Assembly: GCA_964199315.1 (NCBI GenBank)
Contig: OZ116701.1
Location: forward strand, 19,158,001-19,222,000
Source of the DNA: Orbicella franksi
Lineage: Eukaryota
Direction: 5' to 3'
DNA length: 64,000 nucleotides
The notes beneath the pieces were generated by a model. The model saw nothing but the letters and a program-made list of their open reading frames with translations, did not search any database and was not told where the DNA came from. This document shows positions 8,201 through 40,995 of this stretch, piece after piece; positions within the stretch are counted from its first letter, which is position 1; each line of letters opens with the position of its first letter. A program made the translations under genes and the position numbers.

Positions 8201-9890
8201 TACAAAAGAAACATTACGTAAGAAGCACAACAAAAACCTCTCATTTGTACTCATACTTTCAATCTACATTATCAGGTTTATGCCCTTTACGTGCTAGTAA
8301 AACGTACACCCCGCAACCTTCACTACAAGCGCATTTTAAAACACTTTACATGTCTGACAGAAGTTTAATCTTTTTTACAGCCCTTAATGTGACTGCCGTG
8401 TCCTGTAAGGAACTGTATGACAAACACAAGTAAGTTCACAGCTAAATTCCGTTTTGACAATTAAACAGATTCGCTCACCTCTCGATTCACTTCCTACAGT
8501 ACTTCAGCTCAAGATGCTGAGGCAAATCCCTATCTTTCCTTTATTTTATAAACACTACTGTTTAGGAAGAGAGATTATTTTGCAAGCGATTTGATCGAGC
8601 AATCCACAGCGCAACTGAATTCAGTTTCAGCAGTTTATTACTCTAATATTTTAATCACTTTTAGCCCTAATTGTTTGTTCAACAATACTATACCAGTAAT
8701 TGCAAGGTATTTAAATTGTTTGGAGTTCTACTCGTGCAAACCATGCGCTGCACGTTTCATTTCAGCAGCAAACGAAGCTAACCGGCCAAGTTGTGAACAT
8801 GTGGAAACCCAGTGAAGTGAGCGAGATGAACAGCGTATGTCACTAGATTGAGAAAATCCTCTGGTCGTTCAGTAATAATTTAACTGAGAAGTGGCGTGGG
8901 TTCTTTCACTTTGTAAAGATTAAGAAACCTCATCTTCCACAATCCTCTCCATTCTTCTCTATAACAGGTTCAGAGAGGTACAAAAGGTACAAAACCGGTA
9001 TGACTGTGGAAACTCGATATATCACTAGACTGGGAAAATCCCCTGGTCGTACAGTAATAATTTAAGGATTGGCGTTGGGTTCTTTGACTTTACAAGGATT
9101 AAGAAGCCTCATCCTCCACAATCCTCTTTTTTGTCCCCTATAACAGGTCCAGAGAGAGTCAAGTGTATCCACTGATGTTTAGTGAGCACACGATTCCTGT
9201 TTACTGTCACATGGGAAATTTTGGATGTGGAGGTGGAGGATGGACACTAGCCATGAAGGTTAACGGCAATAAGGTACAAATCTCTACCCACAACAATGTG
9301 TTACATGATATGAACGTTATAAGCATTTAAAAATTTTAACGACATGAAAGCTAATATTTTCTTTTCAATTTCAGACAACTTTCCACTACAATTCTCACTT
9401 TTGGAACAACACAAACGGTTATAATCTTACAGCAGGTCGGAGTGGGTTTGACACACAAGAGACCAAGCTACCAACCTATTGGAAGACATCCTTCTCCAAG
9501 ATTTGTCTCGGCATGAAGATCGGTCAACAGACTAACTTCATTGTCATCAACAAGACGGCCAACTCTCTGTACTCACTGATCGCTGACGGGCAATACCGCG
9601 CCACCTCATTGGGCCGTAACACATGGAAGAAGTTGATTGGCTCACAGGCCTCCTTACAGCTCAACTGTAACAAAGAAGGGTTCAATGCTGTGGGAAATAA
9701 TTATTTTCAATCGAAAGCAAGAATCGGCATCACTAATAACCAGCAAAACGACTGCAACAGCTGTGATTCCAGAATCGGGTTTGGTACAGGAGGAGACGAT
9801 GATGACAACAACACGTGTGGAAACGAAGCAACTCACTCACCAGATAATGGAATCAAACACATCAAAGCCATGGGTTATATTTTGGTGTAG
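5241..9890 (+). CDS. USOMP5-like copy 2: signal peptide-PAN/Apple-EGF-fibrinogen-like; exons 5241-5358, 7152-7366, 8082-8217, 8381-8429, 9147-9273, 9375-9890
   Basis: Signal peptide [15 protein letters not shown]; PAN/Apple [21 protein letters not shown]; [23 protein letters not shown]. All phases are compatible. The terminal CAG is mutated to TAG one codon before the ancestral TGA, so the protein loses one residue. Confidence 0.8.
7505..7590 (-). mobile_element. Decayed tRNA-derived SINE head in intron 2 (paralogous copies near 32550-32635 and 49565-49650)
   Basis: tRNA-like segment (..gacgccg..ggacccggg..gagtgctctcaccactgcgtcactcc) present at the same intron position in three gene copies, so it predates the duplications. 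Confidence 0.5.
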
Positions 9891-13230: not shown

Positions 13231-14496
13231 AGCTCAACAGGAGCTAGCTCGAGTAAGAATGAAGAAGGTTTCCCAAGAGTAATACAGGCCGGCCTCTCAA
13301 ACAAGCAGCTTTTCGCACTACTTTTTTCTAGAAAGAACTATCCCCCTTTCCGCAACAGTGTTGCGTCGCATTTTGAAAACATTATGTCTAAAGATGATTG
13401 GTTTTCTTAAAAGTGCCAACTCTGTCAACTGTATGGCGACGAAAGCGACAGCATATCTGAGATAATTTAATTATTCCTGGAAGATACACGATTTATTTCT
13501 TTGTATCCTACACATTCGTAATGTATTATCAAAAAGACTTTAATTGACAAGTTTGCATCAATAATCATTTTGTTTTTCAATATTGACATAAATCTTCGTA
13601 TATTTATTAATGTTTACATTTCAGTCATCCAGCTTTTGTATATAGAGGAAAAGCGGCTCTTCAGTTGGATATAAGAAATTTTTGGTTCTTTACTAGAGTG
13701 TTAACGAGAATTTTATCTTAGTCTGTTAGGGTCATTTGTGCGGAGCAGCAGACAGGAAAAGGTGCAAACTTGCACGAAAACTGATGACAACTGAGAAACA
13801 TTGAAATTACTTTTAAACTGCAAATTGTGTTTCTCTCTCAAACGATCACACTGCCAGCTGATGAGCTTGGCAATATGGTGATGACATTAAACTGACATTT
13901 AGATGTTCCTCCTCTCATTACAGTTCGTAAAACTGCCATGGAACTGCAATTAAAATATAAACCGACAGTTCACCGCTAGTAACTGTTGGTAATTTTCAAG
14001 GCGGAATACTAAATAAAACTCTTCTTTCTTATTACTAATCGTACACAAATTAACCTCAACGCAGATTTAAAAGAGAACCTGGAATGAATTATCTTTGTGA
14101 CGCTTCCCATGTTTTAGTAACTTGTCTCCCTCAGTAAGTTAAGCATCTGTGTATTATCCTGGTTGGAGCCAAGCAGGTGTACTCATAAATAAAGATATTT
14201 ATTCTTATTGAAATTTTATGTCACATACACTTTGTTTCTTCATCCGCGAACAACAAACCTGCTAAAGTTTAGAGTCTTTCATAGTTAAAATTCAATGAAA
14301 GTAAGTTCCCTTTGTTTTTTATCGACAGTTGATGCTTCTATCTCTGTTATATTAATCCCTCACTCGTCTACGAGTTAGCCTGAGTTCTGCTACAAATAGT
14401 GCATTAGACATATTGCCTCATTTCAGTAAATCACATTTCTTTAGGCGCTATTTTCAAAAACAGTTTCTACTAGTGGACGTGACCTTTGCATGTGAG

Positions 14497-17400
14497 ATGG
14501 GGATTTTCAAAGTGACGCTTGCAGTGTTTTGTATCCTTTTCACCGAACGGTGCGATCATGCACGAGGTGAAGACGTTTGTGTTACTAAGCGGTTTTTCTT
14601 TAAAAAAGCTCAAGGTAAGTCACTTCAAATACAATGTTGCTAGTAAATGAAGTACAACTGGGATATCGGTTAAAAGTTAAACTCGGTTTTTGTTGTTCCT
14701 GGCGGTTTCTTTAAGCAGGAGTTTAATTTTTTTGGTACAATATGAATCAAGCAACACTAAAAATCATTTGCCATTGAAACAGGTCCAATAAACTGACTGA
14801 GAATGAAAGTGTTGCGTCGAAAAAGAACACTTTTTCAGTTTCATAAGAACACGAAACGAAAAACGGCTGCTTTTCTTTCTTCTTAGACTCGAAATTTGGT
14901 TTTGGTTTTGCACGTCAACCTCTTTTCAAGAATTAAACTAACTGCATGGTAGAGATACCGTATACCATCTTGCTAACGGATTGCAGTCGTATAGATTCTC
15001 TATATCAGTATTTTAATTTGCGGTTATAATTTAAACAAACTTCCAAACGACCAAACGACCGCGGGAAAACAATAGCTTATGGCACGTGCCTTGGTAAGCC
15101 TAATATCTCTCTAAACAAATAAAATAGGAGCGGGAAGAGTTGTAAGTAAATTGTAGGAGAAATTTACAAAGGCTCGCTTACTCTTTCATTGCCCATCGCT
15201 ACCTCCTTTCGTTCAACAAACAGTTGTACTGCTATAAAAGGGGTAAAAAACGTTCTCTGGTAAAATTGTTTAAAGTTGTGAGCTTTCAACAGCCAGTCTG
15301 CTGTCTTTGACGGACAAATATGAAATGATAAAATAGACCTAAAAGTTTTTGAATATAACAAGCGAATGGCATATATTAAATAGAATACGTGTGAAAGAAT
15401 GCGAGAATGCTAACATAACGAGCTTTAAGGCGCGAAAAAATTTATGCAAATTAGTCTGACGGTAGATTGAATCTACCGTCAACCAATTAAGACCTGTAAC
15501 ATAAGAACGCAGTTCTCACATTCTCCTGACCAAGAATATAACTGATATAATTAGTTAATGGGATTTTCGGTAACACCTCATGCATTGATAAATTCCCACG
15601 AGCACACGCAGTGTACGTGATAAAACCACAGCGCGAGGATTCTCGTCTAGTTCGCGTGAAAAGTTTTTTTGGAATAGCCGGCCATTCACGCTTTTCTTGC
15701 AATTGAGCCCCTTTCCCTGTTTCAAAGACTAACGTAACATTAAACAAATCACGATAAATTTAAGCAAATACACATCATCAAAGACAGCATAAATTTGTTT
15801 GCGTGCTAAGGGCATTTATTGCACAGTAAAACACCAACAATTCGTGTCGTCATATTGAAATATACCATCGTCCATCAGTCTTGACAGTTCTAATAGGCTA
15901 ATAATACTGAAAGCGAGTTATGGAAAAAATGAAAATTCGTCAATTCATGCTAATCGGCTGGAATTGTTCGCAGTATAACAATGTGTAACAATTGATTGAA
16001 AGTCCCGTGTCTATAGAACAGCAGCAAATTCATTTAATGATGGGCGATTTGGTGGATCGTCAGAGGTTAATTTCTTCGCCACTTTCAGAGAAAGCGCTGT
16101 TGCGGTAGGCAATAAATTTAAAATTTTCAGCGCAATCTTTCCGAAAGAAAAGACATCAGAAACTACACTTTGCTGTCCTTTTCCACTAACAATTTCTGGC
16201 GCGATATGTGGGTAAGACCGCCGGTATTCTTCTTGTGCGGAAGGTGACAAATCCATCAATGGTTTTGGGTTGGCAATGCGTCGCGCTTTCCCAAAATCAA
16301 TAATTACGGGATTCCATTGTTCTCCAGGTTTTTCCAGCACAACGTTGTTTGATTTGATGTCGTTATGAACAACACCGGCTTTGTGCATATGATTGAGAGC
16401 GTCCATTATTTTTTTCAGAATTCCTATCCAAGAAGGCTTGTCAAGTGTCCCCTTTTTGATAACCTTGTGTAATGTTGAACAAGAGTTGTTCTGGCCATGG
16501 AACTGAGTTATCAGTCGCAGCGGCAGTGATTTAGTGATAACTCCAAACAGTAAAGGCAGTCCACGGTGGTCACCGAGCTGGCCAATCATTTGAGCCTCTC
16601 TGAGAACTTCTTGCTTTATCTCATCCTGTGACCTTGACTGCCGAGGCTTAAATTCTTTTACTGCTACCGAAATCCCTCTGTAGTAGGCCAGGTAACACGT
16701 GCCAAAAGATCCACAGCCCAAAAAAATTTCTGATCTCACTACTTCCGAAGGATTTATCTCTTTCAATGGTGCAGATACCCGGGTTCGAGCCTCGTCCGAT
16801 TTCTTGGTTTTGGAGGTTGATCCAAGAACATCTACCACGACCGGGCTTTTCTTTGCTTCACAATGCTTGGCCGGTTTTGGCTCAGCAAAACCTTGCTCTG
16901 GCTCGGGAAGCTGACAGCTCATGGACGGTCGCACTGCTTCGGCAACAACTGCAGGTTTAGCTTCTGACTCGCGAGCAAGCTCAACAGCATTCTTGAGACA
17001 TTTGGCTTTCGCCTTCTTATTCCTCCATCGTTTCTTTGCTTCAATCCGAATGCCTTTCATTTTCTCTCTGTCTACGAGTTTCTTCCGCTTGTTTCTCGCC
17101 ATTCTCCTTGCTTCCAACACCCACAGAAATGAAAGGAGATTGAGACGAGCACGAAATGCAAAATGCGTTCAAAGAGCAGCATACGATCAAATCTTACTCA
17201 GGAGCAAATGCTACAATCATGTTTTCCGGCTCTTATTGATCCTTTGTTCCGGCGTGTGAGAACTATAATCCCTTTCAAAAAGATCGAGGGTCTGCTGTGG
17301 GGTAGTGGGAGTCGACAGTTCTCAAACAAAAAGTTTAGTAAATATAGAAACTGAAGAAATGTGCTGCAAAATTTTCGAGAAAACAAAAACAGCGATCAGG

Positions 17401-20400
17401 AACCCGAAGAATATCATCCAACTAACGTTGCACTACTTTTCACGGCAAAGAGATAAAGAAGTTATTCAGTGCCCCCTCCCCCAATAAAATACTAATTGTC
17501 TGTTCCGAATCATTTGTGTGATTGTGCCAAACTGACAGATGTCATTCCATTTCCCCTACTTGGCAAAGCCCTCTTTTCGCAACACAACATTGTGTATAAT
17601 CGCAGAGCTACATTCAAGATCTGAGTTTTTTCGGGGGCCTTCTTTGGTTAATTTCGCATTTTGGTTTGGAAGTGATGGCCTTAGTGGTATATAAGACACG
17701 CTGTGACCTTTGCCTTTGCTCCTTCAACACAACGGCTGCGCTTCTGCGACACAGACTTGTAAAACACAGCCAAGCGGAAACGGTTTCATATTTGCCCTTT
17801 TACAAAGGCGAAGAAGTCGTACAGCTTCCGCGAACAACCAAGAAAGGACGCAGGTCGGCGACCTATAAAGAATGGATCGGGGGCCTTGTGGATAGCATGA
17901 ATTCCTGTTTACATCCCAAAGCTCCTGGTAAGAGCAATAACAACCCTATAGATAACCTTTGACCAGGCTCTATTTTCGCTTCAATGGTAAACCTTTTCCC
18001 ATGGGAAACGAAAATTAGCGAATTGCGACATAAGAGGACATAAGAGCGATGCTAAAATTGGGCCTGATCGCAGGTTATCCTATAGACGAGATAATAAAAT
18101 CTCTTGCGAAGTAAATCTATGGAAGTGATATTAGATTGAACTATTTGCAGGAATATGGTACTTCCGGTCGAGAAAAAAATACCATCATTGTTTCAATAGT
18201 AGGTACGAGCTCAGGTAATACGTTGAAACGCATTAAAAGTCACCAATTCAAATCGACTCACGAATGAACTCCTCTTTTGGTTTGACCATTTTATTTGAAT
18301 GCATGGGAAGCTTTCAATACTTAATTTAACATACGAATGACATGGGAGACGCACACTTACTAGTCCAAAAGGAGAGCATGATTAAGACTTTTTTCGGGGG
18401 GAGGGGGGGGGGGGGCAGCAGCGAGGTATCAATCCTGCAAGGTTTGGACTCTTATGACTCCTCCTTTACTGGCATTAGGTAAATGGTGTCGCGTGGAAAG
18501 ATATGACGTGCCACAAGAATACTTCCAGGCTATGCTGGCGGATATGCCAAATGCATTCATCAACAGCATACGGGAGAAGAGACATCTACGCCCCCCTATA
18601 TGGAGGGAAACCTCCAAAGTACTGTCGTACAGGGATTATCACATTAGCGATTTGGTTGACGCCCTACAGAAACGGAGCGGCGTAAAACTGCATATAAAAA
18701 AGGCTTACCTGGGAGACGAGGAGATATCTGCATTTACCGAAGAACAAGATGGAAGAACCGCACTTGAAGCAGCCAAAGCAAGGGCACACGAACGTACTGC
18801 GAACAAATTTCCAACGCTTCAAATTCAAATTGTTGTGGGACGTGGTGAAGGAAGGGCTACAAGAGAGTTTGAACTGTTGTGGTGGCCGGAAATGTTCTCG
18901 ACTAACAGGCACGGAAAATTAACACTACGATTTTTTGTGTCGAAAGTAAATTTTTCCTAAAATACGCAATTTCCAGTTACAAATAAACAAGAGGCCATGT
19001 TTATTTCTCGGATATGAGATTGTGAAAAAAGTATAACGTCAAAACACTGTGTAACAAGACGCTACAGATGTTAACTTTATGCAATGACAAAACAATTTGG
19101 TGGAATATTGATGTTTCAGTGGCAGTTCCGAACGAAAATAAAGGAAAAGAAAAAAGCTGTAACTGAGCTGACTACCCGAGAAAGACAGAATAGTTTAAAG
19201 TTAGTTGAAAAGGAAATTATATTCTGCCCTCAGATAACAACAGCTCAAATGAACTGACCACCCAAAAAAGACAGAATAGTTTAAAGTTAGTTGAAAAGGA
19301 AATTATATTCTGCCCTCAGATAACAACAGCTCAAATGAACTGACCACCCAAAAAAGACAGAATAGTTTAAAGTTAGTTGAAAAGGAAATTATATTCTGCC
19401 CTCAGATAACAACAGCTCAAATGAACTGACCACCCAAAAAAGACAGAATAGTTTAAAGTTAGTTGAAAAGGGAATTATATTCTGCCCTCAGATAACAACA
19501 GCTCAAATGAACTGACCACCCAAAAAAGACAGAATAGTTTAAAGTTAGTTGAAAAGGGAATTATATTCTGCCCTCAGATAACAACAGCTCAAATGAACTG
19601 ACCACCCAAAAAAGACAGAATAGTTTAAAGTTAGTTGAAAAGGAAATTAAATCAACAGGAAACAAAAGATAAATTTTGGTGTGAGATAGCAACAGCTCAA
19701 TTTGAACGAACTGCACCGGAGCATTGTCACTGCAAGCTAAACAAACTAAATTTACACGTGGGCCCAATCAAGAATCTGAAGCATAAGGTTTTTCCGATGC
19801 AAGTCCATGTCACTGTATCTCCACGCAAAGCTGTTGATACATGAAGGGCCCCTCTCCAAGAAGTCTCTTGCTGCCATGATAACACCAACTCCACAGCTCC
19901 CAGCACCAATCATCTTCGAATCATTCACTCTTTGATCTGGCATTCCAAATCGTTTGAAGTGGTTGCAGTTTACCCAAAACTTTGTTTGGAGGGTCGCATG
20001 AGATGGATACATAATTGTCAGCAGTTCCAACAAATCTTTGATTGTGGGAAGGGTTGTAAATGGGGGAACATATCTTAGTCCATCATCAAAGTACATTTCC
20101 ATCCTTGACAAATTGACATAAATCAAACCCCAGTGGTTTGGCATATGGACTGGGACTAATATTTGCTGGAGGGTGTTGAAATTCTTCAATTCAGATGCTG
20201 TTCTCGCCATCCACTTTTTCTTGAAATTGATGTCGGGTGCTTTCATCCAGTCATAAAATTCTGAAGGAAAGTAAAGTGTATTGTCATTTCCGTTCATTCT
20301 TGCTTCTTCTAAGTACTTTCCTATGGAAATGTCTATTACAAAACTGTCAATATACCTTTCCAATGCAAGATCTGCAAATGAAGTAACGTCAATACTTTTC

Positions 20401-23400
20401 TTTCCAAACCTAAGGATTATATTAGTGGCTGGTTGGTGCCAAAGGGCTTCCTGAATCCTCACTAAATCTGGTGATGAGCACCTCAACTGGTTGAGCCAAT
20501 TTGCCTCAGAACACACCTTATGTCTAGTATTTGCTATGGTGCAAAACTGTTTCAAAACTGATAATCGACGTTCGGAGAACTGTCCAATACCCACTATGTT
20601 GATACCAGATGGATGGTTTCCCTTATTCGTTTCATCATCAAGAAGCTTTTCAGCTTCCTTGACAACATTTTCACAAGGGCGCATATTCAATGTGAAAGGA
20701 TCAGAAATTGTTGTAGCATCACGAACTGGATGAAGACCAGAGGACGGTTTACTTGATATAGGTGGTATTAGGTTGAATAGTGCAGCCACTTCCGCTCTTG
20801 TGGTGGCTTCATCCATAGAGACACGTAAGGCAGCCTGGTTTGATCCATCAAGTTGCCCTCCTTCAGTGATGGGAGAAAAACAAGAACTTCCACTGACAAG
20901 CGATTCTGCTGACATATCATCGATGGTGTCTTCACAAGTCACCTGCTCAGGTGTTTGGTGACTCTGAAACTCTGGAACAGTATTTTGAGGGACATCATTC
21001 TGCAAGGGAGCACATAAATCGGCCTCTATGTTGGAGACATCTTTGGCAAGACCCTGTGGTGAAGATGTTACATCCTCAATTTTGCAGTCATCAGAGTCCT
21101 CATGCATTTCTTGTTTGGGCTTTGGTGAACTTTGACTTTGGCAATTTTGCATCACACTTGCAGGTATATCATCTCGTTGGTCATTGCCCAAATTAGCGGG
21201 GAACAGGCTTGCAGGAACATCATTTAGCAAGTGAGTGTTGAGAGGGGGTCTTGGTTTACAAAGATTCTCTTTTACACCCTCTCTGATAGATGATTGCTCC
21301 GTATTATTCAGTACATGATTGGCGTATTGTACTTCCCAATAATCATGATCATACTCCAGTAGTCTTGACAAATCTTCATCGCTAACTTTGGTACCATGAT
21401 CAACAGTGTATGTGTATACCAGAAAGTCATTTCCAAACATTTGGCTAAATAAGTCACAAACCATCGTTATCCAGTTTCTTTTCTCCTTTGTCCATGATTT
21501 CATGTCAATGCTTTTCCAGCCACATCCACGGTAAAAAAACTTCTTCTTGCCTAAGGAGGGACACACAATATAAAATCACACTCAGTAAGTAAATTTGGTT
21601 AGCAAAACAACGAACTTCAGTCATGCAGCAAACGCGAATCAGCTGCATATAGCAATGGAGTATAGGACACCATCTCTGCATGAAACAAATTATAATTTTT
21701 CTTCCTTCTTTTTATGCAATTCTGGCTGAACCAGTTTCACACCTGTTCCAGCTCTCTGTGTAAACTTTTCAAATTCAAATACATTTTGATAAAATAAACA
21801 TAAAAAGAACCCTCAACACTAACCTGAAATGATGCATTCCCTTGCTTGTTGGAATGAATACCGCAGTGACAAAAGCATGGTTGTATACCAGTGAGTAAGG
21901 ATTTGGTTCACTGAAAATGAATGGAAATTTTCACTTGCTTGTAGCAATTCCATTTCAACTTGGATGTATTACAACAACAACGAGTAAAGTGGGACTATAA
22001 GGTACATCTACTCGGGTTAAACCGACAAGTCAGAACACAAATATTCAAATTAAAACTCTGCCCCTATGTGACCATTTCAAAAGGCAGAACGTCATGTCTA
22101 ATTTGCAAAAGCTGGAGATAAAGCAGTTTCCATCAACATTAAAATTTGTGTATAAGTGTTATTTTTCAACAATGGAATTTACTGATTGCAAATAGGTGTT
22201 TAGTTGGCTGTCCAGGCATTCTACGACACCATAATGTCAAACATGAATCACTCGTTTCTACAAGGGTAAGGTTAGTTGCAAAAAAAGACTTTTCAATAAG
22301 TTTTTCATGTAGCTGTAAACCATAGCTATAAAGCAATTTTCCATGGTTTCAATAACTAACTTTCTTTTTTTGTTATTTCTACATGTTTAAAATTTATGCA
22401 TACTTACAAGATTGGCCTTGTCCTGAACAATCATGATTTGTGGCCCTGGAATACAACTGCCTGTGTAGCTTGTGTGAAGACTCAAATCCTTGGCCAGAAT
22501 ATTTATATAGGGAACGAAAATGTCGCAACAGCATTGCACTGGGTCCACGACAAGATGTCCGTAGTCCCCTATGCCAAGGTGATGGCCAAATAATTTCTTT
22601 AACAGAAATCCCCACTCTTTGCACTGAAACAAAGACCATGAATAAATGCAAAGTCATCTTCCAATATGCTAAGACAATGGTTGAATGGGAACTTTCACAA
22701 CAATTCCTGATTACTACAGTAGCGGCCCTAGGGATAGCAGCACTTGTGCACAAATACTGTAATTTGGTAAATGAAGGACTGTCACTACTACAAAGGCCAG
22801 CAACTCAGTTACAAAAAGAATACAATGTTTTGAAAGTGAAGAGAAGAAACCTAGAACCTCTGTGTTACCTGGCATAATGTTGGATCACATTTTTTGCAAT
22901 GCCTTTTGTCAATGATACATCAACAGTAGCAGCAATGGTTCTTCATGCCATTAATAACTTAAAATTCTAGTTCCAGCATGGGTATTATTTCCTATACAAA
23001 GAAAAATACAATAAATTTGTAACCCCCTTACAAAAACCCCTGTCTTAAAAGCCACAGAGTATTTTGTTACCTTGACATCATGGATGTCTATCAACTGTTC
23101 CTCATGTTGATTAAATACTTTATCACGTATCGTAAGGGCAATGTCTCTCCAATCACAACAGACCTGAAATTAATATTTGGCAGGGTTGTTATTCAGTTGA
23201 AGACCAGAGCCATGCAAATGGTTTTTTTACAGAGGGGCATGCAGGCATACCTGCAGATCTGAAATAAATCATTATTGCTACGATAAGAGATTTGTAGATG
23301 TCTACTTGTACATGTATGTTTAGGTACTTCTCCTACATACATACACACATAAACTTTATTTCACCTTTGATTTACGGAGTAGCCATAAACACTAATATCT

Positions 23401-26400
23401 CCAAGAAGATAAATGTCCTATGCTACTAATTAACTCCCACTCCCTACTATACAGACATGTACATGTTTACAGCTGATCACAATTTAAAATTTAGTTGGCT
23501 GATATAACATTTAAAATCATGGAGATTCAGGAGTATTCTCAAATTGCCAGGTAGGCTATCCCATGCTTTTGTGGCTGAGTATCTATAGGAGTGTAGGTCA
23601 TAGGCAGTAGAAAGCTGCTCAGGAAGACTGAGAATGTTGGTACCTCATAAAGAATAGGGTAAACACATTTTTAAGTAGACTGGACAATTTGAGATATTTA
23701 GACATTTAAAGAGTACAGTTAAAATGAGCTTTTGCTCATGATTGGCCTTAAAAAAAGCTGGCATTTCCACCTTAGAAAACTTGTATAAGTGAAGGCTAAT
23801 TAACATCTGATTTTAGTATTTCAATCAATAACAGAATGGATCAGGCTTGACAAATCAGACTAAAGGGAATGGTGATAATAATTTCAATCCCTTTTTGATG
23901 CTTAAATGGTAACTGAAATCTTAGCAGCATCATGTTCCTTTCCCAAACTGTGACTACTTCTGAGAACAAATTAAAGGAGGTCTTCAGGCTCACATATTGA
24001 TTAGCTTTGCTTAAAATGGCACTCACTGGTCAAAAATTTTAAAACTGCCTGTAACATACAGGGTAGTACAGCTGTATTTGAAATCTGAACTTCAAATGCC
24101 GTTTGTCTCATAATAATAGTTTACCTTCACAAAAAACTGAATTTGAAGCTCAGCTGCATATGTTGAAAAAGTATCATCTCTGGTGTGTTCTGGTAGCATT
24201 TCTTTCTTCGATTTCCTCCTCTTTTTCTGCTTTGGCTCATTAACTGGCACCTGGCCTTGTGCTAACTCCATGTACCTTTCATCTGCTTCTCTTTGCTTTA
24301 GAGCCCAATACTCTTTATGGTTTTCCAAAAACAATTTAAACTCTAAAAGATAAAACCAGTGCAGATTTAACTTTAAGAAATTTGGCTGTCATAGCAAAAT
24401 GTACACTTTACAAGGGCTTTTTGTTTGTACTATAGACAACTTTTCTGAAAATTCTTTTACAGTAATCTGATTTTTACTCCTTTCGAAAAATTGTCTCTTC
24501 AGGGGTAGGTAACACATATGGATGTATCTTCTGACCAGAACCACAAAGTACACACCACAGTTTTACACATCTTGTGTATAACTTTCCATGTCAAACTGCA
24601 CAACAATAAAGAATTACAACTAAAAGCTAAAGTTTGTTTGCAAGATTAGTACCTTTTGTGTCCTCTAAGTTGACTGTTTCTTGTCCTGAGCCAAGATCAC
24701 GTACAAATGTACCTTTTTGGAGTATCTCATTTATGAACTAGAAAAGGTGAAAATAAGTACTATTAGCTACTTTTACTTTCTATACCAGAACCAATCAAGG
24801 ATTATAGGACTGCATTTGACCCATCAAGTTGTTCTCCAACCAAGACAAAAAAAATTATTTTTCACAGTACAAAAATTTATACACTGTAATATGGTACATT
24901 AGAACTTGATTCATTGTCAGTTTCCAAGTAAAAAGTCAAGACCTACCACAATACGCTCTTCGAAGAAGGTAACATAGCCTAAGATCACTTGTTCTGATGA
25001 ACCACGGTTTTCCTGGAAGTATTTTTTCACTTTTTCAAGGGGTAGTGATCTTTCAACAATTTCCTCAAAATTTCTCAAAATTGCTCTTTCAGTAGATCCT
25101 GTGACAAAAACAAATAAAGGTTTATGAGCTGATTTACATTAAGAACAATATTATTTTGTTATTATGAGAATCCTTTGTCATAACAAAATTGTAATAGTGC
25201 ACACTGGAAATAGGTTACTTAATTCATGTAGACAGCCAGTGAGGCAGTCAATACAGAGACTGTCAATGACTGTTGGTTCAGCTGACAAGAATGCCAAGAA
25301 AAAAAACCTTTAAGATTACTGTACCAATTATTATGCCCTATGGACATTCCTATTTATATTGTATCTTGTTCTGAACTATACCTGAGAATGAGGCCACATG
25401 TATGTTTGCTCTTTCTATAGATGTTTGTTGTCCTTTCCTTTCTTTGACAGTGACACGGGGAAACCCTCTGCAGTTTTCAGGCCCATAATTAGATAAAGCT
25501 TCATTTAACTTGTCGAGGCTTCCAATACGATGGGCAAACAAGCCTAGGGACCCCAAAAGCTGTTCACAGTTCCTCATTTCACAATGCAGAGAACACAAAT
25601 TGACATTACACAAATCTTCCTCAAGAAGAAAGTTGAGGTCTTCTCGAAGACCAGAACCTCTGGAAGATAACAAAAGGGAGGTTGGACCGGTACTTTTTTT
25701 AAGCCTGTGATTGAGCAGTTCATTAGATCTTGTAGAGTGCAATGTATACCAGTGACACATTATATTGAAGGCAACAGAAAAAAAGTATAAATGGTATAAT
25801 AAACACAGCTACTGTAGTTAACTAGTTTGCTATACTTACAAGAGTCTTATAGGATGTTTATGAATTGAACCAAGCCGATAAAACAGATTAAACCAAAGCA
25901 ACACATACCATGCTCTTGGCAGTAAAACAATATTTTAACACACACTGTGCATACCATGTTGCAAATGTGGCCCAGGTTAAGGATGTGTAGAATTAAATAC
26001 ACATATAGTACATGCAGGTACCTCAAAAGTTAACACACCCTCAGAGTCTGGTTATATCAAACTTAAGTAGCTTGTCATGGAAATACTAATTTTAAAGGAT
26101 CTTCAGGATACAGAATTTGGCTGTAACAAGAATGCCTTCTGGAATGTAAGCTTCAGGAATGTACATAAAATAAGCTTTCCAAGTTGGACACATTATTTTG
26201 GCTCATGAAACAGTGATGGTTTTCACCTTGAGATATCAGATATTACTTTTTGTTATGGCCTGTAATGTAAGAAAATATTGGGGAGTATAACGTACAAAAA
26301 AGAACCTTGTGTTCATAGATATGTAGCTAGGCCAAACTATATAGTCATGTAACATTGTTCCAGCTATACATGTGCATAATGATAATTATTATAAGTGCTG

Positions 26401-29400
26401 GAATTTGGTCAATTCAGGGCCTATCCTTTATGTGGGTGAGTTGAACTTGTAATAATTGTGCTTTTAGTTACCTTCCAATGTTAGCTTTTGATCTTAAGCA
26501 ATCTAAACATGCCTCATCGGGATCAGCTCCATGTGATGTACAAGCCTTTCATAAATAAACAGCAAAAGATTTCAAGTTCTAAATATCACACAATATTACA
26601 ATTGGACATAGCTAGATTTATTCACTTACATCTGAATTGTAAGCCAGCAATTAGTCTATATGACATCAATATGAATGGCAGAAGTCAATAATTGTTATAT
26701 TCAATACAATAACTAGGATATGCATACTGTATTTAGAGATATTGTTTACCCTAATAGCATCGCAATAGGCACAACATTCAACATTGTAGCCTTTTCCACC
26801 GAGAGTGAAGTCCTCATCATTTTTCTTATTCAGAAGAAGCAACAGGGCTTTGTAGTCCAGAGTTACTGTAAAAAATTTGTACTTGAGGTGTTAGGGACAC
26901 TTGTACTGATAGCAAAGTATAATACAGTGAGCCCCAGCTCACTTAACACCTCTCACACATAAATGCACAAACATCATACAGAAAAATCAATGTGTTCACC
27001 ACTCTGATCAAAGGAGAGCTTGGAACAGAAGGTCCAAGTTCATTTTGTTTGCATTCAAGATACACATCTAACGGAGTAATCAAAGAATTTTGTAATACCT
27101 GTGAACTTGATTTTGTACTTTCTGCCATCCACTACAATGCCATGTTTTTTAATGCAGTTCTTCTGGGAATTTAGATTTCTCAGGAGCTGCTTTAAATTGT
27201 CTCTAATTTGGAAGTAGAAAAACACATAATAAGTGTACTCAACAACTAGGTTGTCTGCAATGCAATTGCTCACAATACAGAGTCAATAACATTCACTTGA
27301 AATTAAAAAAAATAAGATTGTCAGCATGCAGAAGGCCGACGGGACACCATATTTACTCAAAAAGTGTGCTCCTCCCAGATACGCTACATTAAACAGCCCA
27401 CAAAATTTAACAAGTGCTACAGGGATTTTTCAAGTTTTCAAATGCCCCACATGACTACAGCACAGACCTAGAAGGGTTTACATGCAAATTTACGTGGTGC
27501 TGACATTGACCCAGGCCTTTGAATTCCACAGGAGAATAACACTGACATTAATTGAAAAGGTAATTTAACTTATTTTCTTTATTTCAGTTAAGCACTTAAT
27601 TATTATGACGTGTATGCACTGACCTTTTCTCTTTACAGTTTGCTATAGCAAGTGGGTAGATGGACAGTACACTCTCTGAACTCTTGTTTGCAAAGCCAAT
27701 GGGAGCTACACCCACAGCTACCTGATCTCTGCCTTTTGAACAAAAATATAGGATAAATAATATTTTGCTCCCACATATATAGCTTCTTCAGAATCATAAC
27801 ATATATCAATTCAGTGCCTTAGAGAAAACCTGGCACTGATATATAATATACTTCTGTAAAGATTTTTCTGTATACATAATCCAAACAATGACCATTTGAG
27901 CAATCAATAGTAAAGACAGCTATATCCAGCTCGAAAGCACTGCAGATTACAGATGTCAGGTCTGAATGTCTAAGACAGAAGTCGACAGGCCATTACTGTA
28001 TTTATTTGAATAACTTCCCACTCTGAAAGCCCAAAAATTATGAATTAGCCCCCACACCCACTGACTCCCAACATTGAAGGGGCAGCACCGGTGAATTCAC
28101 TCATTGCCATTATGGATTATGCCATTATTATGCCATTATGCCATTATTATGTGGATGAGATAAAAAAAGTGGATAAGATAGAAAAAGATATAAAAATCGA
28201 GTGAGAAATGTGAACCTGACTGACAATTGCTCAGATTTTTGACCCAGTCAATGGACTTTTATATTGCTTATGCTTTGTTCGTGTTAGCTATTGCACTTTT
28301 TTCCATTATTTTGAAGCAAAATGAACTTGTTGCCCTTTATTTTGTTATTATCCAAAAATTAATGTCCTTACTAACTAAAAATGTTGAAAAAATAATAAGC
28401 GCCCACCTGAAATAAGTGCCCAGCCTTAAGGTCCCAAGACCAAGGCAGTAATTCTAATAAATATAATAGCTACATGGCAATTAAAGGCAAGCCGCAAAAA
28501 CAATATTTTTCTTAAACTTTGGAGTTCAAGGCCAAACGATTGTTTTGACAGCATTTAATTAACCTGTCAATTGTTGTCACAATGGACAAAGACCAAAACA
28601 ACTTGTACACACCTCCAAGAGGACGGCCATCAAGCTTGATATTAAATTCCATATCCTCAGTGTCATTCGAGAAGAGGCGCTGTTCTCGGATGGCCCACAC
28701 CAGCACTGCACTTAGGTCTACATCACATGCATCAAAATCAGCATTCATCCTGTCAATCTTCAATGTTTTCCTCACAACAGAGAAGATAAGCTTCTTGATG
28801 GCTCTGATCTCATTTTTCGTGAGCAGCACAGGTGTATCATCAGATTTCTTAACAAGATGGATATAATTGTTAAAAAACAAAAATTTAAACTATAGCATAA
28901 GTTATCCTACTGTACTAATGAAATTCGACGGACACACTAAGTCTTGCTTGAAACTGGCAGGCAAATTCTCCTGTACAAATTAATGTCAATGATTGAAATG
29001 GAAATCTTCAAACATGCTCTTTTCATCTTAAAATACAAAACTTACAAACTTACAAAACTCAAACAACTGCAGTGAAACTCTATTATTCAATAACCTTGAG
29101 CAGCAAACTGTACTATGTGTTTGAGTGTGTACTTGTTTAAAAACAAACCAACTAGGCCGCATGACATAATGATTTTGTAAGAGGGAACAGGGCGGGGATG
29201 ACTAATTACAAAATCTCATGTTTCAAAAGGGGTTGGGAGGCTTATTAGAGAAGGGGAGCTTATTACAAAAACCAACTTTCAAACAGGGGGCTTATTAAAA
29301 CCAGGGGTTGTTGACAGAGATCGGGGCTTAATAGAACTTTTACATGTACTACTTCCTTATATATACATGTACGAGGGCTGTTCTGCAATAATATGTAATT

Positions 29401-32400
29401 AAATTTTTTTTTAAAAAAAGTGATAAAAACGATGTACAGGTGATCATTCACAATCATCAAATATTCCTCAGTAATTTATATCGTCACCTTAAGTTAATTG
29501 ATTTAATTAAGAAAAGAAATAAAATTAAGTAAGAATGTATACTCACTCCACTCTTTCCAAGCTGCGTCAAATTTAGCAATGTCTGCCACGCCGAGTCAGG
29601 AAGCCTTGACTGAAGCTTAAAAAACAAAAGCGCCCAATCTGGAACTCTCATGGATTTCATAATTCGCCCATAGGTCGACGATGATAAGAGATCAGATAAG
29701 CCTTTCTTGGGACCCTTGGCATCCAAGACCATATCCACGACCTCGGAAATTGTATCTCTCACTTGCTCTTTCTCGTTTTCATTTCCGAAGATAAACCCGT
29801 TCCCCAACACAGAAGATACTGACTCACGATACTTCTCACTGACGTCGTTGAGGGAAGCCATCACCTGACTGCATTGCTTTGCTATTTGCCTCTTTTTCGT
29901 CGTCGATCCTAGTGGACTGCTTTTAATTTCTTCAATTGAACTGCTGCTTGTCGATGGGGATGTTGGCGATGATCGACCCGAACAAGTCAGCGATTTCGTA
30001 GACTCTGGAGAAGATATTGATAGCGAGATGGAATCACCCAGAGTTTTTTCTTGTACTTGAGACTGAAGATTTCTTATCTCGGCTTGGAGTGCGTCCATCT
30101 CAGCCTTGAGCGACTCGATTTGGATGTTGCTCTCGAGTTGATCGAGGTAAACCATTTTCCCGCCAGAATCAACTTTGCTCGGCGGCGTCAATGGCTCCAA
30201 ATCAAGGGTGATAGAATTTATAATTCTTGCGACCGACTGGAAGGAGGGCGAACTGATCAGACCATCAGCTGGAATTTCCCTCTGTCTTAACAGACCAGCA
30301 CATAGGCCAAAAGACGAAGCCACGCATAAATTTCTTGGCTGTCTGTTCCATCTCGATAAATTGGCGGGCTCGAGTTCGCGCGAAGCGATTACTTTGACTT
30401 CATCGGGAAAAATCTTAAATACGCCATTCTTTAAAAAGTCAACTGGTCTCGTTCCCCCACATAGTTCTTTCGTCAAAACATACCAATTCTTGTGCGGGTC
30501 AAGGAACGCGCTTGTGACCCGTGCAAGACGCGTAGAGCTGAACTCCGATGGCACTGGAGGAGATTGTTCTTCCTCCATGCCGGTGCCGTGGATGATGTCG
30601 AAATAAAATACATCATTGCTTTGAAACTTAAATTTCCCGCCTGAGTAAAATATTACCACTGCAGTCAACATTTAACTTTTAGACCCCGAGTGGTACCTTC
30701 GTGTTAATGGCGACGTACAACAATGGTAATACGTCACCTTACGCATCTATCGCGCGTTACGTGGTTGAGCGTGACACATTCTTACGAGGCAAAGCGTCGC
30801 GTGGAATTAGTATCGCTTTGCAATCCTTTATTTGCCATTTTGATTCATAATTTGCCTTTTAAAAAACGCTGGGATGTTTCCTCTTGAAAATGTATCGCAT
30901 GTATACAATCATGCTAACTGATGAGCAATATCCTTCGTATAGTACAGACCATGACAGATATGACCGGACATTGCTCAGATCGCAAAGAGCTGAACTTCGG
31001 TCGCTTGATTTATAAAAGGTTTTCGGTTTTTGAAAAAGCACCAATCGTCAGTCTCCGCTTTGCACGCGTATTCGCGAGGCTTTTTCTTCCATCCTCGCAC
31101 AGCTGGTCATCTAGTGAGATCTACTTTATCGACCTAATCCAAGAGACTAATTAGTCGGCAAACACCTCTTCACCGTATGTTAAAAGACATCTTATGTCAT
31201 GTAATTACAAAGTTTGAATGGTTACAGATCATCTCCCGAATCCTGTGGTGATTTTTTTCTTCCGATAAAGCTCGTTACACTTTTAGCATTCTTGCATTCT
31301 TTCACACGTATTCTATTTAATATATGCCATTCGCTTGTTATATTCAAAAACTTTTAGGTCTATTTTATCATTTCATTTTTGTCCGTCGAAAAAAGCAGAC
31401 TGGCTGTTGAAAGCTCACAACTTTAAACAATTTTACCAGAGAACGTTTTTTACCTCTTACAATGAATCCTGGTATCACATCTTCAATATTTTTAAGTTGT
31501 ACTGCTGTTTCATTGAATTTAAAGCGTTTTTCAAATCCCCTAGTAAAGAAGTATAAATACTGTCGCTGCACCGAAGCTAAATAAGCAACGAAAAAATGGT
31601 CATCCATGCCCTTAATTTTTTTGTGGAAGGTCCTAAGGTCTATATTTTTGGTCGGGGATCGTTTTTTCAACACCAACAAAAAAGTTAATACGTATATCAA
31701 TCGGCTCAGCTTGTTTTATGTAAATTCATGGTCTTCGCAATGCGATAACATCGTAGCTCTTAGAAAAGCAAAAGAAATCACTGCCCAGAGTCAACATGAA
31801 CACTGACTTGCAACCAAACGCTTCCAACAAGCCGATAACGAATCACAATTTTTCGCAAATAAGGGAAGGCGTTAAAACTCAAAATTAATGTCTTTTTTGT
31901 GTTACCTGGAGACGCTGTGCTGATAAATCACGTGATCACAAAGTACCAGGTCACCTCGGTGATCGATTGTGCTCACCGGTGCATGCGCGAGTCCAGGTGC
32001 GTTTCCTTCAACTTCGAGGATCACGCTACATCGCTAAGACACGTGTGCCAGATCAATGACGAGAAAAAGCAAAAGAACTTTGAAAACTTCATTGGCCTGG
32101 ATGGGTTCAGTTACTATGAGTTTGAGGTAAGTCGTCGAGGCGTCAAAATATGCACACCCTTTAAAAGACGCTACTTTAGGGCAATGATGCTGTAATATGC
32201 ATTACAGTATAGCCGAAAACGTAGCCTCCGTGAAGATGTCCCTCGTTTATGCATAACTCATTATATCACTCTTTTAATAGCTCAGTGGACTTATATGGTA
32301 AAATTTAACAAATCTAGACCATTGTCAATGAAAATATGTCTGTCTTTTACGTTTGACCCCGTCGAAAGTTTGCTTGTCCCTCTAAGCTTCTAGCATTACT

Positions 32401-35079
32401 TGAAAGGCTTGCAAATCGGGAACACATACCAGATGGAATTGGAATTTGTTGTGTTGGTTATTGCGCGGAGGACGAAAAAGGTGAGAACCCAAAAGAAAAA
32501 CATCGGGCCAAGGACGAAAACCAACAAAAATCTCAAACCATGCACCGGTATGACGCCGTGCGGGTTAACGATTAGGACCCGAGCACCGACAGGGTAGGAG
32601 GCCAGCGAGTGCTCTCTCCACTGCGTCACTCCTTGGTTCCCGACATACCTTGAACAAGCTTGCTGTTTAATTCAAAATATGTATTAACTAAGATCAGAGC
32701 GGGAGACTCTAGTTCAAATATAACACCGATGTTTCACTACGAGCACACGAGAGCTCATCATTACTCCTACCTCCAGTAAGTTCTAGGTGGCATGTCTCAG
32801 CTGCATATGGTTTGAGGAAGCACGAGAATTGACATTAAATTTCTGACGTTTGGGGTTATATCTTAGTAGCACGTAATCTTCAAGTCCACATGTAAGAAAA
32901 AAGACAATCGACCGGTTACTGGATCTTTCTTATTTATCTTCATTCTCAGCAGCCTCTCGCATGCGGTGTTGGTTCATGTCAAAATGGCGGCATTTGCGTG
33001 GAGCAATGTGACGGAAACCGCAAATGTATCTGTAAAGAAAGGTACACCGGAGCACACTGTGAAAACATTCTCAGTACAGCAGAAACATTACGTAAGAAAC
33101 ACAGCAAAAACCTTTCATTTGTACTCATACTTTCAATGTACATCATATTTTACTGGTAATAATTAAATTAACTGGTGTACTGGAACAACCTTGCACAGGG
33201 GCTGGTGGGGCCAACAACACGATGGTTTGTAACTGGATTTAGGACAGTAGCATATTAACGAAACCAGTTAACTGGAAGCTCTAATCGCGCAGCATGGTCA
33301 ATAAAACCTGCACTCCGCAACATACACCAGGTTAACATCGCTCGATCGTTGACTGTATTGACTCGGAGTCTTGTTAGTAGCAAGCGCTGTTTAAAACAAT
33401 TTATATAACTGACAGACGTTTAATCTTTTTTACAGTCCTCCCTGTAACTGACGTGTCTTCTTGTAAGGAACTCTATGACAAACAGGAGTAAGTTCACAGT
33501 TAAATTCCGTTTTGGCAATTTAAACGGAGTCGTTCACCTCTCGATTCACTTCCCACCGTACTTCAGTTCACGACGCTAACGTGGCGTTTTGTTTAAAAGC
33601 ACAGATATCCAGGCAGACCCCTATCTCTTCTTAATTTTGTAAACATTACTGTGTAGGAAGAGGGACATTTGTGCAAACGATTTCACCAAGAAACCAATAG
33701 CGCCGAGAAATCCATCGCGCAACTGAAATCAGTTACAGCAGTCTACATTTTTCTCGCATTTTAATCACTTTTGGCCCTTATTATTTAATTTTTCATTCAA
33801 TGATACTATACTAGTAATTGCAAGGTATTTAAACTGTTTGGATTTCATCTCGTACAAACCATACACTACGCGTTGCACGTTTCGTTTCAGCAGGAAACGA
33901 AACTAACCAACCAAGTTGCGAACATGTGGAAACTCGAGTGGAAATACAGTCAAGTGAGTGAGATGATCAGTTTATTTCACTAGACTGGGAAAATCCTCTG
34001 GGCGTACAGTAAAATTTTGGCCTGGCTCGTTGACTTTGGACAGTTAAGAGAGCTGTATCACGGTTTGCGCATCTTGAAAAGTTTAGCCTAAATTTTTCAA
34101 GTTCACCGTTTGTAATCCGTGTCAATCTTCTCTATCATTAACCATCCGTGTTCCCTTAATGGTTTATTGTTAACTCTTTGGTGTTTTTCTATCTTAGAAA
34201 ACTATTAATTTCAGGTTTCCTTCAGTTTAAAGGTAATTTTGTACGTGGCCAAAATTAGCTCAAAATGCTGTGACTGAACTCCTTTAAGTAGCCTTATCCT
34301 CCACAATTCTCTCTTTTCTCCCCTATAACTGGTCCAGGGAGAGTCGAGTGTTTCGACTGATGTTTCGTGGGCAGACGATCCCTGTTTATTGTCACATGGA
34401 AAACTTTGGATGTGGAGATGGAGGATGGACACTAGCCATGAAGATTAACGGCAATAAGGTAAAAACCTCTACCCAGCGATGTCCCATGTAAACAATAAGC
34501 ATTATGGACATTCATCGACATTTTAAGCTAATATTTTCTTTCTGCCACGTTTAATTTCAGACAACTTTCCACTACAATTCTCACTTTTGGAACGACAGGA
34601 AAGGTTATAATCTTACAGCAGGTCAGACTGGGTTTGATACACAGGAGACCAAGCTACCAACATACTGGAGCACACCCTTCTCCAAGATTTGTCTCGGTAT
34701 GAAGATCGGCCAAGAAATGAACTTTATTGTCATCAACAGGTCGGCCAACTCTCTGCACTCACTAATCGCTGACGGGCAATACCGCAACACCTCACTGGGT
34801 CGTAACACGTGGAAGAAGTTGATTGGTTCACAGGCCTCCTTACAGCGCAACTGTAACAAGGAAGGGTTCAATGCTGTGGGAAATTCTATTTCCCAATCGA
34901 AAGCAAGAATCGGCATCACTAGCAATCAGGAAAATGACTGCGGCAACTGTGATTCCAGAATAGGGTTTGGTACAGGAGGACGCCATGATGACAGCAACAC
35001 GTGTGGAAACGAGGCAACTCTCTCACCAGATAATGGAGACAAACACATCAAAACCATGGGTTATATTTTGGTGCAGTGA
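14497..35079 (+). CDS. USOMP5-like copy 3; exons 14497-14614, 31912-32126, 32950-33091, 33436-33487, 34338(34332)-34458, 34561-35079; intron 1 expanded by the 16.3-kb insertion
   Basis: All six exons are open and in phase. The exon-5 acceptor is mutated AG>TG at 34330-34331, with an in-frame AG 6 nt downstream. Confidence 0.7.
15234..15427 (-). repeat. Left inverted repeat: Penelope-like 3' UTR/pLTR fragment
   Basis: Reverse complement of 31266-31459 and of about 254-435. Confidence 0.9.
16011..17102 (-). CDS. Intronless Ser/Thr protein kinase (~363 aa) with basic N-terminus
   Basis: GCGSFG loop, VAVK lysine, HNDIKSNN catalytic loop, DFG, HIAPE and DVFSFG are all present. The first ATG is at 17102; the ORF track starts at an upstream GTG. 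Confidence 0.9.
   Translation of the reverse strand: MARNKRKKLVDREKMKGIRIEAKKRWRNKKAKAKCLKNAVELARESEAKPAVVAEAVRPSMSCQLPEPEQGFAEPKPAKHCEAKKSPVVVDVLGSTSKTKKSDEARTRVSAPLKEINPSEVVRSEIFLGCGSFGTCYLAYYRGISVAVKEFKPRQSRSQDEIKQEVLREAQMIGQLGDHRGLPLLFGVITKSLPLRLITQFHGQNNSCSTLHKVIKKGTLDKPSWIGILKKIMDALNHMHKAGVVHNDIKSNNVVLEKPGEQWNPVIIDFGKARRIANPKPLMDLSPSAQEEYRRSYPHIAPEIVSGKGQQSVVSDVFSFGKIALKILNLLPTATALSLKVAKKLTSDDPPNRPSLNEFAAVL
17675..18960 (+). CDS. Two-exon protein (~244 aa; exons 17675-17927, 18479-18960) with one N-terminal C2H2 zinc finger; function unknown
   Basis: [22 protein letters not shown] finger. The phase-1 donor cctg/gtaag and acceptor ttag/gtaaa join PKAP-G-KWCR into the 18454-18960 ORF. 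Confidence 0.7.
19181..19648. repeat. 86-bp tandem repeat, about 5.4 near-identical copies
   Basis: aaagacagaatagttt recurs at 19181, 19267, 19353, 19439, 19525 and 19611. Confidence 0.95.
19752..30578 (-). CDS. Spliced RAG1/Transib/Chapaev-type DDE transposase fused to a C-terminal Ulp1/SENP (C48) protease, ~1,550 aa, one apparent frameshift
   Basis: Exons (minus): 30578-29547, 28847-28613, 27732-27624, 27202-27099, 26865-26750, 26545-26472, 25659-25382, 25098-24947, 24737-24653, 24342-24125, [24048-23164 unresolved], 23163-23071, 22623-22408, 21910-21824, 21550-19752. Motifs in order: [29 protein letters not shown](H), QGFES. Protease: NHWGL, YFDDG, Q..GSCGV. One base is missing at about 22541-22543. 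Confidence 0.8.
31266..31494 (+). repeat. Right inverted repeat: Penelope-like 3' UTR/pLTR fragment plus a 35-nt extension
   Basis: Matches about 254-430. It is followed by acaatgaatcctggtatcacatcttcaatattttta before the target duplication. Confidence 0.85.
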
Positions 35080-40596: not shown

Positions 40597-40995
40597 ATAA
40601 TAATAATAAAAAAGCCTGGGAGCCGACTGGCTCATAGCTGTCGGAGCTTATCCCGGTTTCTGTAGCATGAATCGAAGCGGCAAGGAATATTTCTACTCTC
40701 CCTGGACGGGATGCTAGTCCATCTCAGGTCACTCCCCCGCAATTTGTTAGGTTTCCCCAACAATTCACCGGTATCTATTTATACTCCTGGGTGGAGGGAG
40801 GCTATTTATACTCCTGGGCGGAGGGAGGCTATTTGTAGCTTAAATAATTAGGCGAAGCAAACCGCCAGAAAGTAAAACTCGCCGAAAGAGTTAAGTGCCT
40901 TGCCCAAGAACACAACACAATGTCCCCGGCTAGGGCTCGAACCCCGACCGCTCGATCTGGGGACGAACGCACTAACCATGAGGCCACGCGCCTCC
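40597..40995 (-). mobile_element. tRNA-derived SINE with (TTA)n tail
   Basis: The minus strand starts ggaggcgcgtggcctcatggttagtgcg...ggttcgagcc (A/B-box-like). The element is absent at the paralogous site (about 14740). Imperfect duplication ttatgaat/ttatcaat. Confidence 0.8.

Follow-up and report, generated by a model that had tools for sequence, protein, structure and literature searches.

We analyzed a 64,000-nucleotide stretch of the Orbicella franksi genome (contig OZ116701.1, positions 19,158,001 to 19,222,000; hereafter, the window) in which a large insertion carries three genes: a minus-strand gene for a transposase joined to a protease, a plus-strand C2H2 gene with two exons, and an intronless minus-strand kinase gene. 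The mobile unit lies at positions 15414 to 31277 on the minus strand and is bounded by the inverted ends 5'-CATAACGAGCTTTA...TAAAGCTCGTTATG-3'. As an initial annotation of this DNA had noted, the whole segment is missing from paralogous gene copies; the two uninterrupted host copies are at ~5953 and ~41500 in the window. That annotation placed a three-gene module at 16011 to 30578. The gene content stands, whereas the extent does not: the unit is wider, because its termini were located at 15414 and 31277. Related loci in other assemblies are designated by L numbers, and individual homologs are designated by P numbers.

Products and layout of the three genes

The kinase open reading frame (ORF) extends from 16011 to 17120 on the minus strand, with a likely ATG start codon at 17102 (Table 1). 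Its product is a eukaryotic protein kinase (Pfam PF00069, Pkinase; E = 9.5e-29), and a homolog that is 96% identical likewise has 363 amino acids, consistent with the initial call of an intact, intronless Ser/Thr kinase gene. The motifs GCGSFG, VAVK, HND (a non-RD catalytic loop), DFG, and APE are readable in the translation. The closest solved kinases are CTR1, CDPK1, Lyn, and LIMK1 (E = 1e-11 to 6e-14). The N-terminus is very basic, and the kinase is probably nuclear.

The C2H2 protein has 244 amino acids. Annotated proteins of Montipora foliosa, Stylophora pistillata, and Actinia tenebrosa are spliced at the same exon junction, and the two-exon structure first read from the letters is therefore correct. 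Exon 1 is conserved in L006, L014, L015, and L016, and Pfam recognizes the finger weakly (E = 0.03 to 0.09). A model of the protein (predicted local distance difference test [pLDDT] score, 59.6) had no match in the PDB and resembled neither RAG2 nor a kelch protein. Matches among AFDB clusters were uncharacterized cnidarian C2H2 proteins, a "C2orf42 homolog," and SWIM-type proteins; the similarity to C2orf42-like and SWIM-type proteins, the only lead, is weak.

The layout of the genes is as originally described. The start codons of the kinase and C2H2 genes diverge from a spacer of 572 bp (~570 bp in the initial annotation), which we presume to be a bidirectional promoter, and the C2H2 stop codon (18960) faces the transposase stop codon (19752), tail to tail, across an array of 86-bp repeats. 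An array with this period is kept in every lineage compared (L001 to L010), at just 65 to 75% identity; it might serve as a terminator, a spacer, or a regulatory element.

From 30578 to 19752 (minus strand), comparison with distant copies identified ~15 conserved coding blocks of the transposase-protease gene. Two spliced gene models from the sea anemone Actinostola, P0068 and P0076, have the same order of blocks and matching junctions. The last exon carries a 604-amino-acid ORF (19752 to 21566, minus strand). From sequence, the protein is predicted to have ~1,600 amino acids, in which an N-terminal coiled coil is followed by an RNase-H/DDE core and, at the C-terminus, by a cysteine protease of the Ulp1/SENP type. 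Its motifs are, in order, KLDGRPLGG; the invariant NCxE and TLDYK; C-x2-C (CAYC); H-x4-H (HLVVDH); and GQGFESSHK. We take these to correspond to the RAG1 regions around D600, D708, C727/C730, H937/H942, and E962, a presumed correspondence that we used as a lead and not as a test. A 1-nucleotide deletion at 22540 to 22543 (~22541, minus strand) shifts the window gene out of frame within the H-x4-H motif, a short way upstream of the E presumed to be catalytic. L001, L002, L003, L006, and L010 are all in frame at this site.

Pfam returned no match for the transposase. Likewise, phmmer and hmmsearch detected no similarity to RAG1 or Transib sequences at E values up to 10 when exons, exon profiles, and spliced homologs were compared with all PDB chains. 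We modeled the structure of homolog P0068, using an alignment from which short exon fragments misplaced by MAFFT had been left out. Nearly all of the best Foldseek matches of this model were RAG1, HzTransib, and BbRAGL. VIA-align gave Z scores of 6.6 to 8.6 for 35 RAG1, Transib, and RAGL entries, versus 4.4 for the next unrelated chain, and superposed ~120 residues (mouse RAG1 533 to 783) with a root-mean-square deviation of 2.6 to 3 Å. AFDB models of RAG1 from eight vertebrates aligned to the P0068 model over RAG1 residues 571 to 717. The model thus predicts an RNase-H core of the RAG1/Transib-type fold.

For the protease, we built a profile from the C-terminal 280 residues of the last exon in 17 sequences. 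This profile matched yeast Ulp1 (1euv; E = 7.8e-8), SENP1 (8.8e-5), and SENP2 (2e-4), in agreement with the deSUMOylase assignment of the initial annotation, and the aligned regions include the catalytic His and Asp. Conservation is complete for H156 and D173 and at least 90% for Q223 and C236. Pfam's own protease model scored below threshold on the window protease domain. Judged by these alignments, the C-terminal domain is a Ulp1/SENP-type protease fused to the transposase.

Table 1. Features of the insertion, in window coordinates
Feature	Position	Strand	Remarks
Left copy of 12-bp direct repeat	15222..15233		AGTTGTACTGCT; flanks the whole 16.3-kb composite insertion
Inverted 3' tail (~180 nt) of a dispersed retroelement-like repeat	15234..15413	-	3' end outward; outside the transposon
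3' terminal inverted repeat	15414..15440	-	Complete; reads CATAACGAGCTTTAAGGCGCGAAAAAA inward; same terminus in L002 and L003
Ser/Thr protein kinase gene	16011..17102	-	Intronless; 363 aa + stop; Pfam Pkinase, homologs
Spacer between divergent kinase and C2H2 start codons	17103..17674		572 bp; partly kept upstream of the kinase in L002/L003
C2H2 gene, exon 1	17675-17927	+	Single C-x2-C-x12-H-x4-H finger
C2H2 gene, intron	17928-18478	+	GT..AG
C2H2 gene, exon 2	18479-18960	+	Alpha/beta domain without assigned fold; includes stop
86-bp tandem repeat array	19075-19738		Between convergent 3' ends of C2H2 gene and transposase
Last transposase exon, E15	19752..21569	-	Variable linker, then Ulp1/SENP-type C48 protease domain (~19755-20576)
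Transposase exons E14 to E1	21822..30578	-	Approximate; blocks in next two rows
E14-side blocks	21822-21920; 22400-22626; 23053-23166; 24101-24352; 24648-24731; 24926-25114; 25380-25661	-
E1-side blocks	26471-26545; 26750-26869; 27097-27210; 27617-27733; 28608-28850; 29523-30578	-
5' terminal inverted repeat	31253..31277	-	Without the two outermost bases (compared with L001, L012)
Second copy of the retroelement-like 3' tail	31278..31458	+	3' end outward
Filler, then right copy of 12-bp direct repeat	31459..31505		35 nt filler (31459-31493), repeat (31494-31505)

Termini, linkage, and selection across Anthozoa

Aligning multiple copies defined their shared ends as sharp boundaries with terminal inverted repeats (TIRs). 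From window position 31277 to the end of its own contig, L001 matches the window collinearly with 88% identity, and homology with L002 and L003 ends at window positions 15414 and 15412. The termini read CATAACG.../...CGTTATG in the window, L001 to L003, and L012; CATGACG.../...CGTCATG in L004, L006, L011, and L014; and CACGAG.../...CTCGTG in L016. In Exaiptasia (L014), a deletion derivative of 7.56 kb, in which the C2H2 and kinase genes are retained, lies between perfect 29-bp TIRs, and in Actinostola (L016), 25-nt TIRs span 16.06 kb. The outermost bases co-vary in inverted orientation (CATA/TATG, CATG/CATG, and CACG/CGTG), which makes them part of the element rather than of the target. The idea that CATG, or its central AT, was a palindromic target or a 2-bp duplication had come from a diverged paralogous site that has CATG where L003 is inserted; we rejected it since the co-variation is inverted, not direct. 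The Actinostola element sits in a host tandem repeat (AACCATAAATGTAATAA-type, flanked by long inverted repeats) with no duplicated bases. Just upstream of it, L016:22582-24919 holds a partial 3' part of a related element, with protease and kinase fragments.

The initial annotation had proposed that the three genes travel together. We examined this linkage from both directions. Homologs of the protease exon, with 84 to 44% identity, in six other assemblies have a Pkinase ORF 1.5 to 4 kb downstream on the same strand; this arrangement was seen in L001, L002, L003, the L004 to L009 family, L010, and the P0009 locus. In total, the search from the protease exon gave seven lineages with the kinase downstream. 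Starting from kinase matches, we recovered the protease exon, the opposite-strand C2H2 gene (both exons), and the kinase in Exaiptasia diaphana (L014) and Desmophyllum pertusum (L015). A distant transposase match led to the identical gene order in Actinostola sp. (L016), at 32 to 40% protein identity. Neither search found kinase or C2H2 homologs occurring independently of the transposase. Altogether, nine lineages of the element, from stony corals and sea anemones, share this gene order and orientation, the kinase being present in all nine and the C2H2 gene in six.

In one coral assembly, six contigs carry an identical protease ORF within copies that are 99.6 to 99.9% identical and have unrelated flanks. 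Similarity among the members of this multi-copy family (assembly ERZ25067879) starts at 5'-CATGACGAGCTTAGG and stops at ATAAGCTCGTCATG-3', ~600 bp beyond the kinase. Since these near-identical copies end past the kinase in unrelated sequence, the kinase and C2H2 genes lie inside the recently moved unit, and recent activity is suggested in at least one coral assembly. We also considered a conserved, vertically inherited host gene cluster, in which a domesticated transposase and its neighbors are not mobile. Gene order is indeed conserved in many anthozoans, and NCBI pipelines annotate the kinase and C2H2 genes as ordinary genes. However, several 99.8%-identical copies with sharp TIR boundaries lie in unrelated flanks on different contigs of a single assembly, there are deletion derivatives with perfect TIRs, and the segment is absent from the paralogous sites in the window. 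We regard an immobile cluster as exceedingly improbable.

In pairwise comparisons, protease-domain identity rises and falls with kinase-domain identity (Spearman 0.92), and both domains yield the same groupings, which points to a single ancient acquisition followed by co-divergence. The ratio of nonsynonymous to synonymous substitution rates (dN/dS) was 0.18 to 0.22 for the kinase domain among independently inserted copies, 0.20 for the C2H2 gene (window versus L001), 0.09 to 0.21 for the transposase core, and 0.26 to 0.32 for the protease domain. We concluded that the unit moves whole and that all three genes are under purifying selection and have co-diverged.

These values bear on whether the kinase and C2H2 genes are neutral passengers, captured once by an ancestral element and adding nothing to transposition or element fitness. 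Gene capture by DNA transposons is common, and individual copies do lack the cargo: L005 is truncated and has no kinase, the kinase of L010 is interrupted, and in L002, L003, and L010, where the C2H2 gene is deleted or, in L010, undetected, the transposase exons match in one frame each, free of the frameshift of the window copy. (The insertion that splits the L010 kinase [L010:13939-19398] is 5.4 kb long and includes an opposite-strand 1109-amino-acid ORF with a faint Rep_N match.) Neutral cargo, however, would have decayed over such distances, whereas linkage and order persist down to 32 to 40% protein identity from stony corals to sea anemones, dN/dS is low among independent insertions, and the catalytic motifs are intact. 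A purely passenger role is therefore quite improbable.

Our preferred interpretation, to which we assign a probability of roughly 85%, is that window positions 15414 to 31277 hold one copy of an anthozoan family of cut-and-paste DNA transposons that are of autonomous type, are bounded by TIRs, and have three co-inherited genes. It agrees with the single cargo-bearing DNA transposon envisaged at the outset. Several points weigh against it. Judged from their flanks, none of the four complete copies (L003+L012, L004, L014, and L016, from four species) has a target-site duplication, which is unusual for elements of the CACTA/Transib type. L002 and L003 have lost the C2H2 gene by deletion, and it was undetected in L010; hence, it is not needed in cis. 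The structure model represents exons 2 to 7 of P0068 and not the window protein; its pLDDT is middling overall (62.7), with 70 to 90 in the RNase-H part. The PDB holds no CACTA or Chapaev structure, so the fold matches cannot separate Transib from the other lineages of the CMCT clade, which, as defined by Kojima in 2025, comprises CACTA/EnSpm, Mirage, Chapaev, and Transib (PMC12730594). Finally, only linkage and purifying selection suggest that the kinase and protease have a role in transposition.

The site of the window copy and a proposed mechanism

The window copy lies inside a composite insertion whose flanking 12-bp repeat, AGTTGTACTGCT, is present once at each of the two uninterrupted paralogous sites (~5953 and ~41500). 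Between the repeats and the element are two retroelement-like tails that form a 176-nt inverted repeat, 97% complementary (15238-15413 and 31283-31458). The flanking tail is 95% identical to window positions 254 to 437, which lie behind an ORF ending at 249; because the same sequence follows the end of that ORF, we identified the ~180-nt sequence as the 3' tail of a dispersed repeat. The reference copy of this repeat occupies window positions 1 to 437, and the C-terminus of its ORF looks GIY-YIG-like to the eye and has no Pfam match. A Penelope-like label for the repeat that supplied the tails was not confirmed by Pfam. We had considered the 176-nt inverted repeat as the TIR of the element and rejected it: the precise point at which L001, L002, and L003 cease to be homologous falls within it, and a third copy lies at 254 to 437, behind an unrelated ORF.

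The best explanation of this arrangement is that the window copy was not placed by canonical insertion and lies between inverted tails inside a 12-bp target duplication. The two tails begin 6 nt apart in the repeat's own coordinates. This offset, together with the TIR that is 2 nt short, suggests junctions made by end joining or template switching rather than a transposase-made insertion. The configuration resembles the outcome of either of two events: an excised element was captured by end joining at a break that a retroelement had made, or the element inserted into an inverted dimer of tails that was already there.

Because its transposase is frameshifted and one of its ends lacks 2 nt, the window copy is probably nonautonomous. 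It may be an inert relic of retroelement-associated break repair or segmental rearrangement, with kinase and C2H2 ORFs that are intact only because it is young. We find this rather probable for the copy itself, given the frameshift, the short TIR, the inverted retroelement tails within the 12-bp duplication, and a synonymous divergence from the nearest copy, L001, of just ~0.15. The frameshift, though, is located in a short run of C and may be an error of the assembly, and an inert window copy is compatible, not in competition, with a cut-and-paste family as described above.

In the mechanism that we propose for the family, the transposase would excise and insert the element through its 5'-CA..TG-3' ends. 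The protease and kinase may act on host or element proteins, for example, factors of SUMO-dependent silencing or double-strand-break repair, in a way that favors transposition, and the C2H2 protein could assist by binding DNA or by countering silencing and could be supplied in trans. The "post-translational toolkit," as the initial annotation termed it, would be a putative function of the kinase and protease. A different mechanism seems unlikely to us: blunt ends of the excised element would be joined to pre-existing host double-strand breaks without staggered strand transfer, the kinase and deSUMOylase would steer break repair or silencing, and the C2H2 protein would be an accessory cofactor. 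Joining to pre-existing breaks would explain why target-site duplications are missing at four of four complete copies and why the window copy sits between inverted tails inside a 12-bp duplication. If it were true, the family would represent a second, independent RAG1-fold enzyme with recruited partner genes.

The host sequence around the insertion is itself repeated. Three paralogous copies of a host segment lie at ~5150-8900, at 13270-15233 with 31506-34050, and at 40250-41500 with 48530-51070, and the 16.3-kb insertion is found only in the middle one. One host-segment copy has a PAN/Apple-like ORF (31899-32195). Elsewhere in the window, a 691-amino-acid ORF at 44701-46776 (minus strand) has many zero-stretch, repeat-like Pfam matches and probably encodes a low-complexity or repetitive protein, and two reverse-transcriptase (RVT_1) ORFs lie near the window end, at 61864-63965.

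Classification and relation to known systems

RAG1-fold transposases attract study because V(D)J recombination arose from them; in that origin, acquisition of the RAG2 partner gene is the key unexplained step. The anthozoan family described here shows such an enzyme retaining accessory genes over a very long period, namely, the kinase in 9 of 9 lineages, the C2H2 gene in 6 of 9, and a fused Ulp1-type protease. A literature search found no paper on a cut-and-paste transposon with its own conserved protein kinase or on this three-gene layout. If the family has been active recently, roles of phosphorylation and deSUMOylation in transposition would be directly testable; should the apparent lack of target duplications hold up, the family would be mechanistically odd for the CMCT clade.

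By sequence features, the family fits the broad CMCT clade rather than RAG/Transib proper. Like members of that clade, it has DDE motifs, with C-x2-C (CAYC) and H-x4-H (HLVVDH) preceding the putative last catalytic E (GFES), 5'-CA..TG-3' termini, and an RNase-H core predicted to have the RAG1 fold. It differs in that the 2- to 5-bp target-site duplication was not seen at the four complete copies, in that no sequence match to named members was found, and in its three genes. A Zisupton/KDZ transposase, which we had guessed from the association of such elements with SUMO proteases, was dropped because the motifs and fold point to RAG1/CMCT.

Both RAG-like and Transib elements have been reported from corals (PMC7204232, PMC9435367). 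The anthozoan family resembles Transib and RAG1L-RAG2L elements in its best structural matches, in having a second gene that is convergent, as RAG2L is, and in being a TIR-bounded cnidarian cut-and-paste element. Since no CACTA or Chapaev structure has been solved, the fold matches indicate the clade and not a special kinship with RAG. The features that define Transib or RAG-like elements in the strict sense were not found: there is no sequence similarity in the searches described above, no 5-bp target-site duplication, no heptamer resembling that of recombination signal sequences (CAC[A/T]GTG; the first seven terminal bases are CATAACG, CATGACG, or CACGAGA), and no nonamer-like sequence in the TIRs. 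As for the RAG2-like position proposed for the partner gene, its convergent placement is real, whereas a RAG2-like fold is not apparent, the C2H2 model having no RAG2 match. The partner is a C2H2 protein without kelch or PHD domains, and the kinase gene and the Ulp1 fusion are additional to anything in the RAG1L-RAG2L pair. The analogy with RAG transposons is therefore positional only and is otherwise unsupported.

Other mobile elements also encode C48 proteases. Ginger2/TDD, Crypton, and Polinton elements have Ulp1-like proteases (PMC2836005, PMC3212892, PMC10175614), as does the anthozoan family, but they move by unrelated enzymes (an integrase, a tyrosine recombinase, and self-synthesis). 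Another parallel is with the CACTA-ULP and MULE-ULP (KI-MULE) elements of plants, in which a transposase is joined to a Ulp1-like C48 protease (PMC2528002). These elements share with the anthozoan family a transposase of the same broad clade together with the Ulp1-like C48 domain; they differ in their plant hosts, and reports on them mention no conserved accessory genes of the kinase or C2H2 kind. The ULP fusion in the anthozoan family presumably arose independently of those in plants, and the shared joining of transposase and ULP suggests that ULP domains associate repeatedly with transposons.

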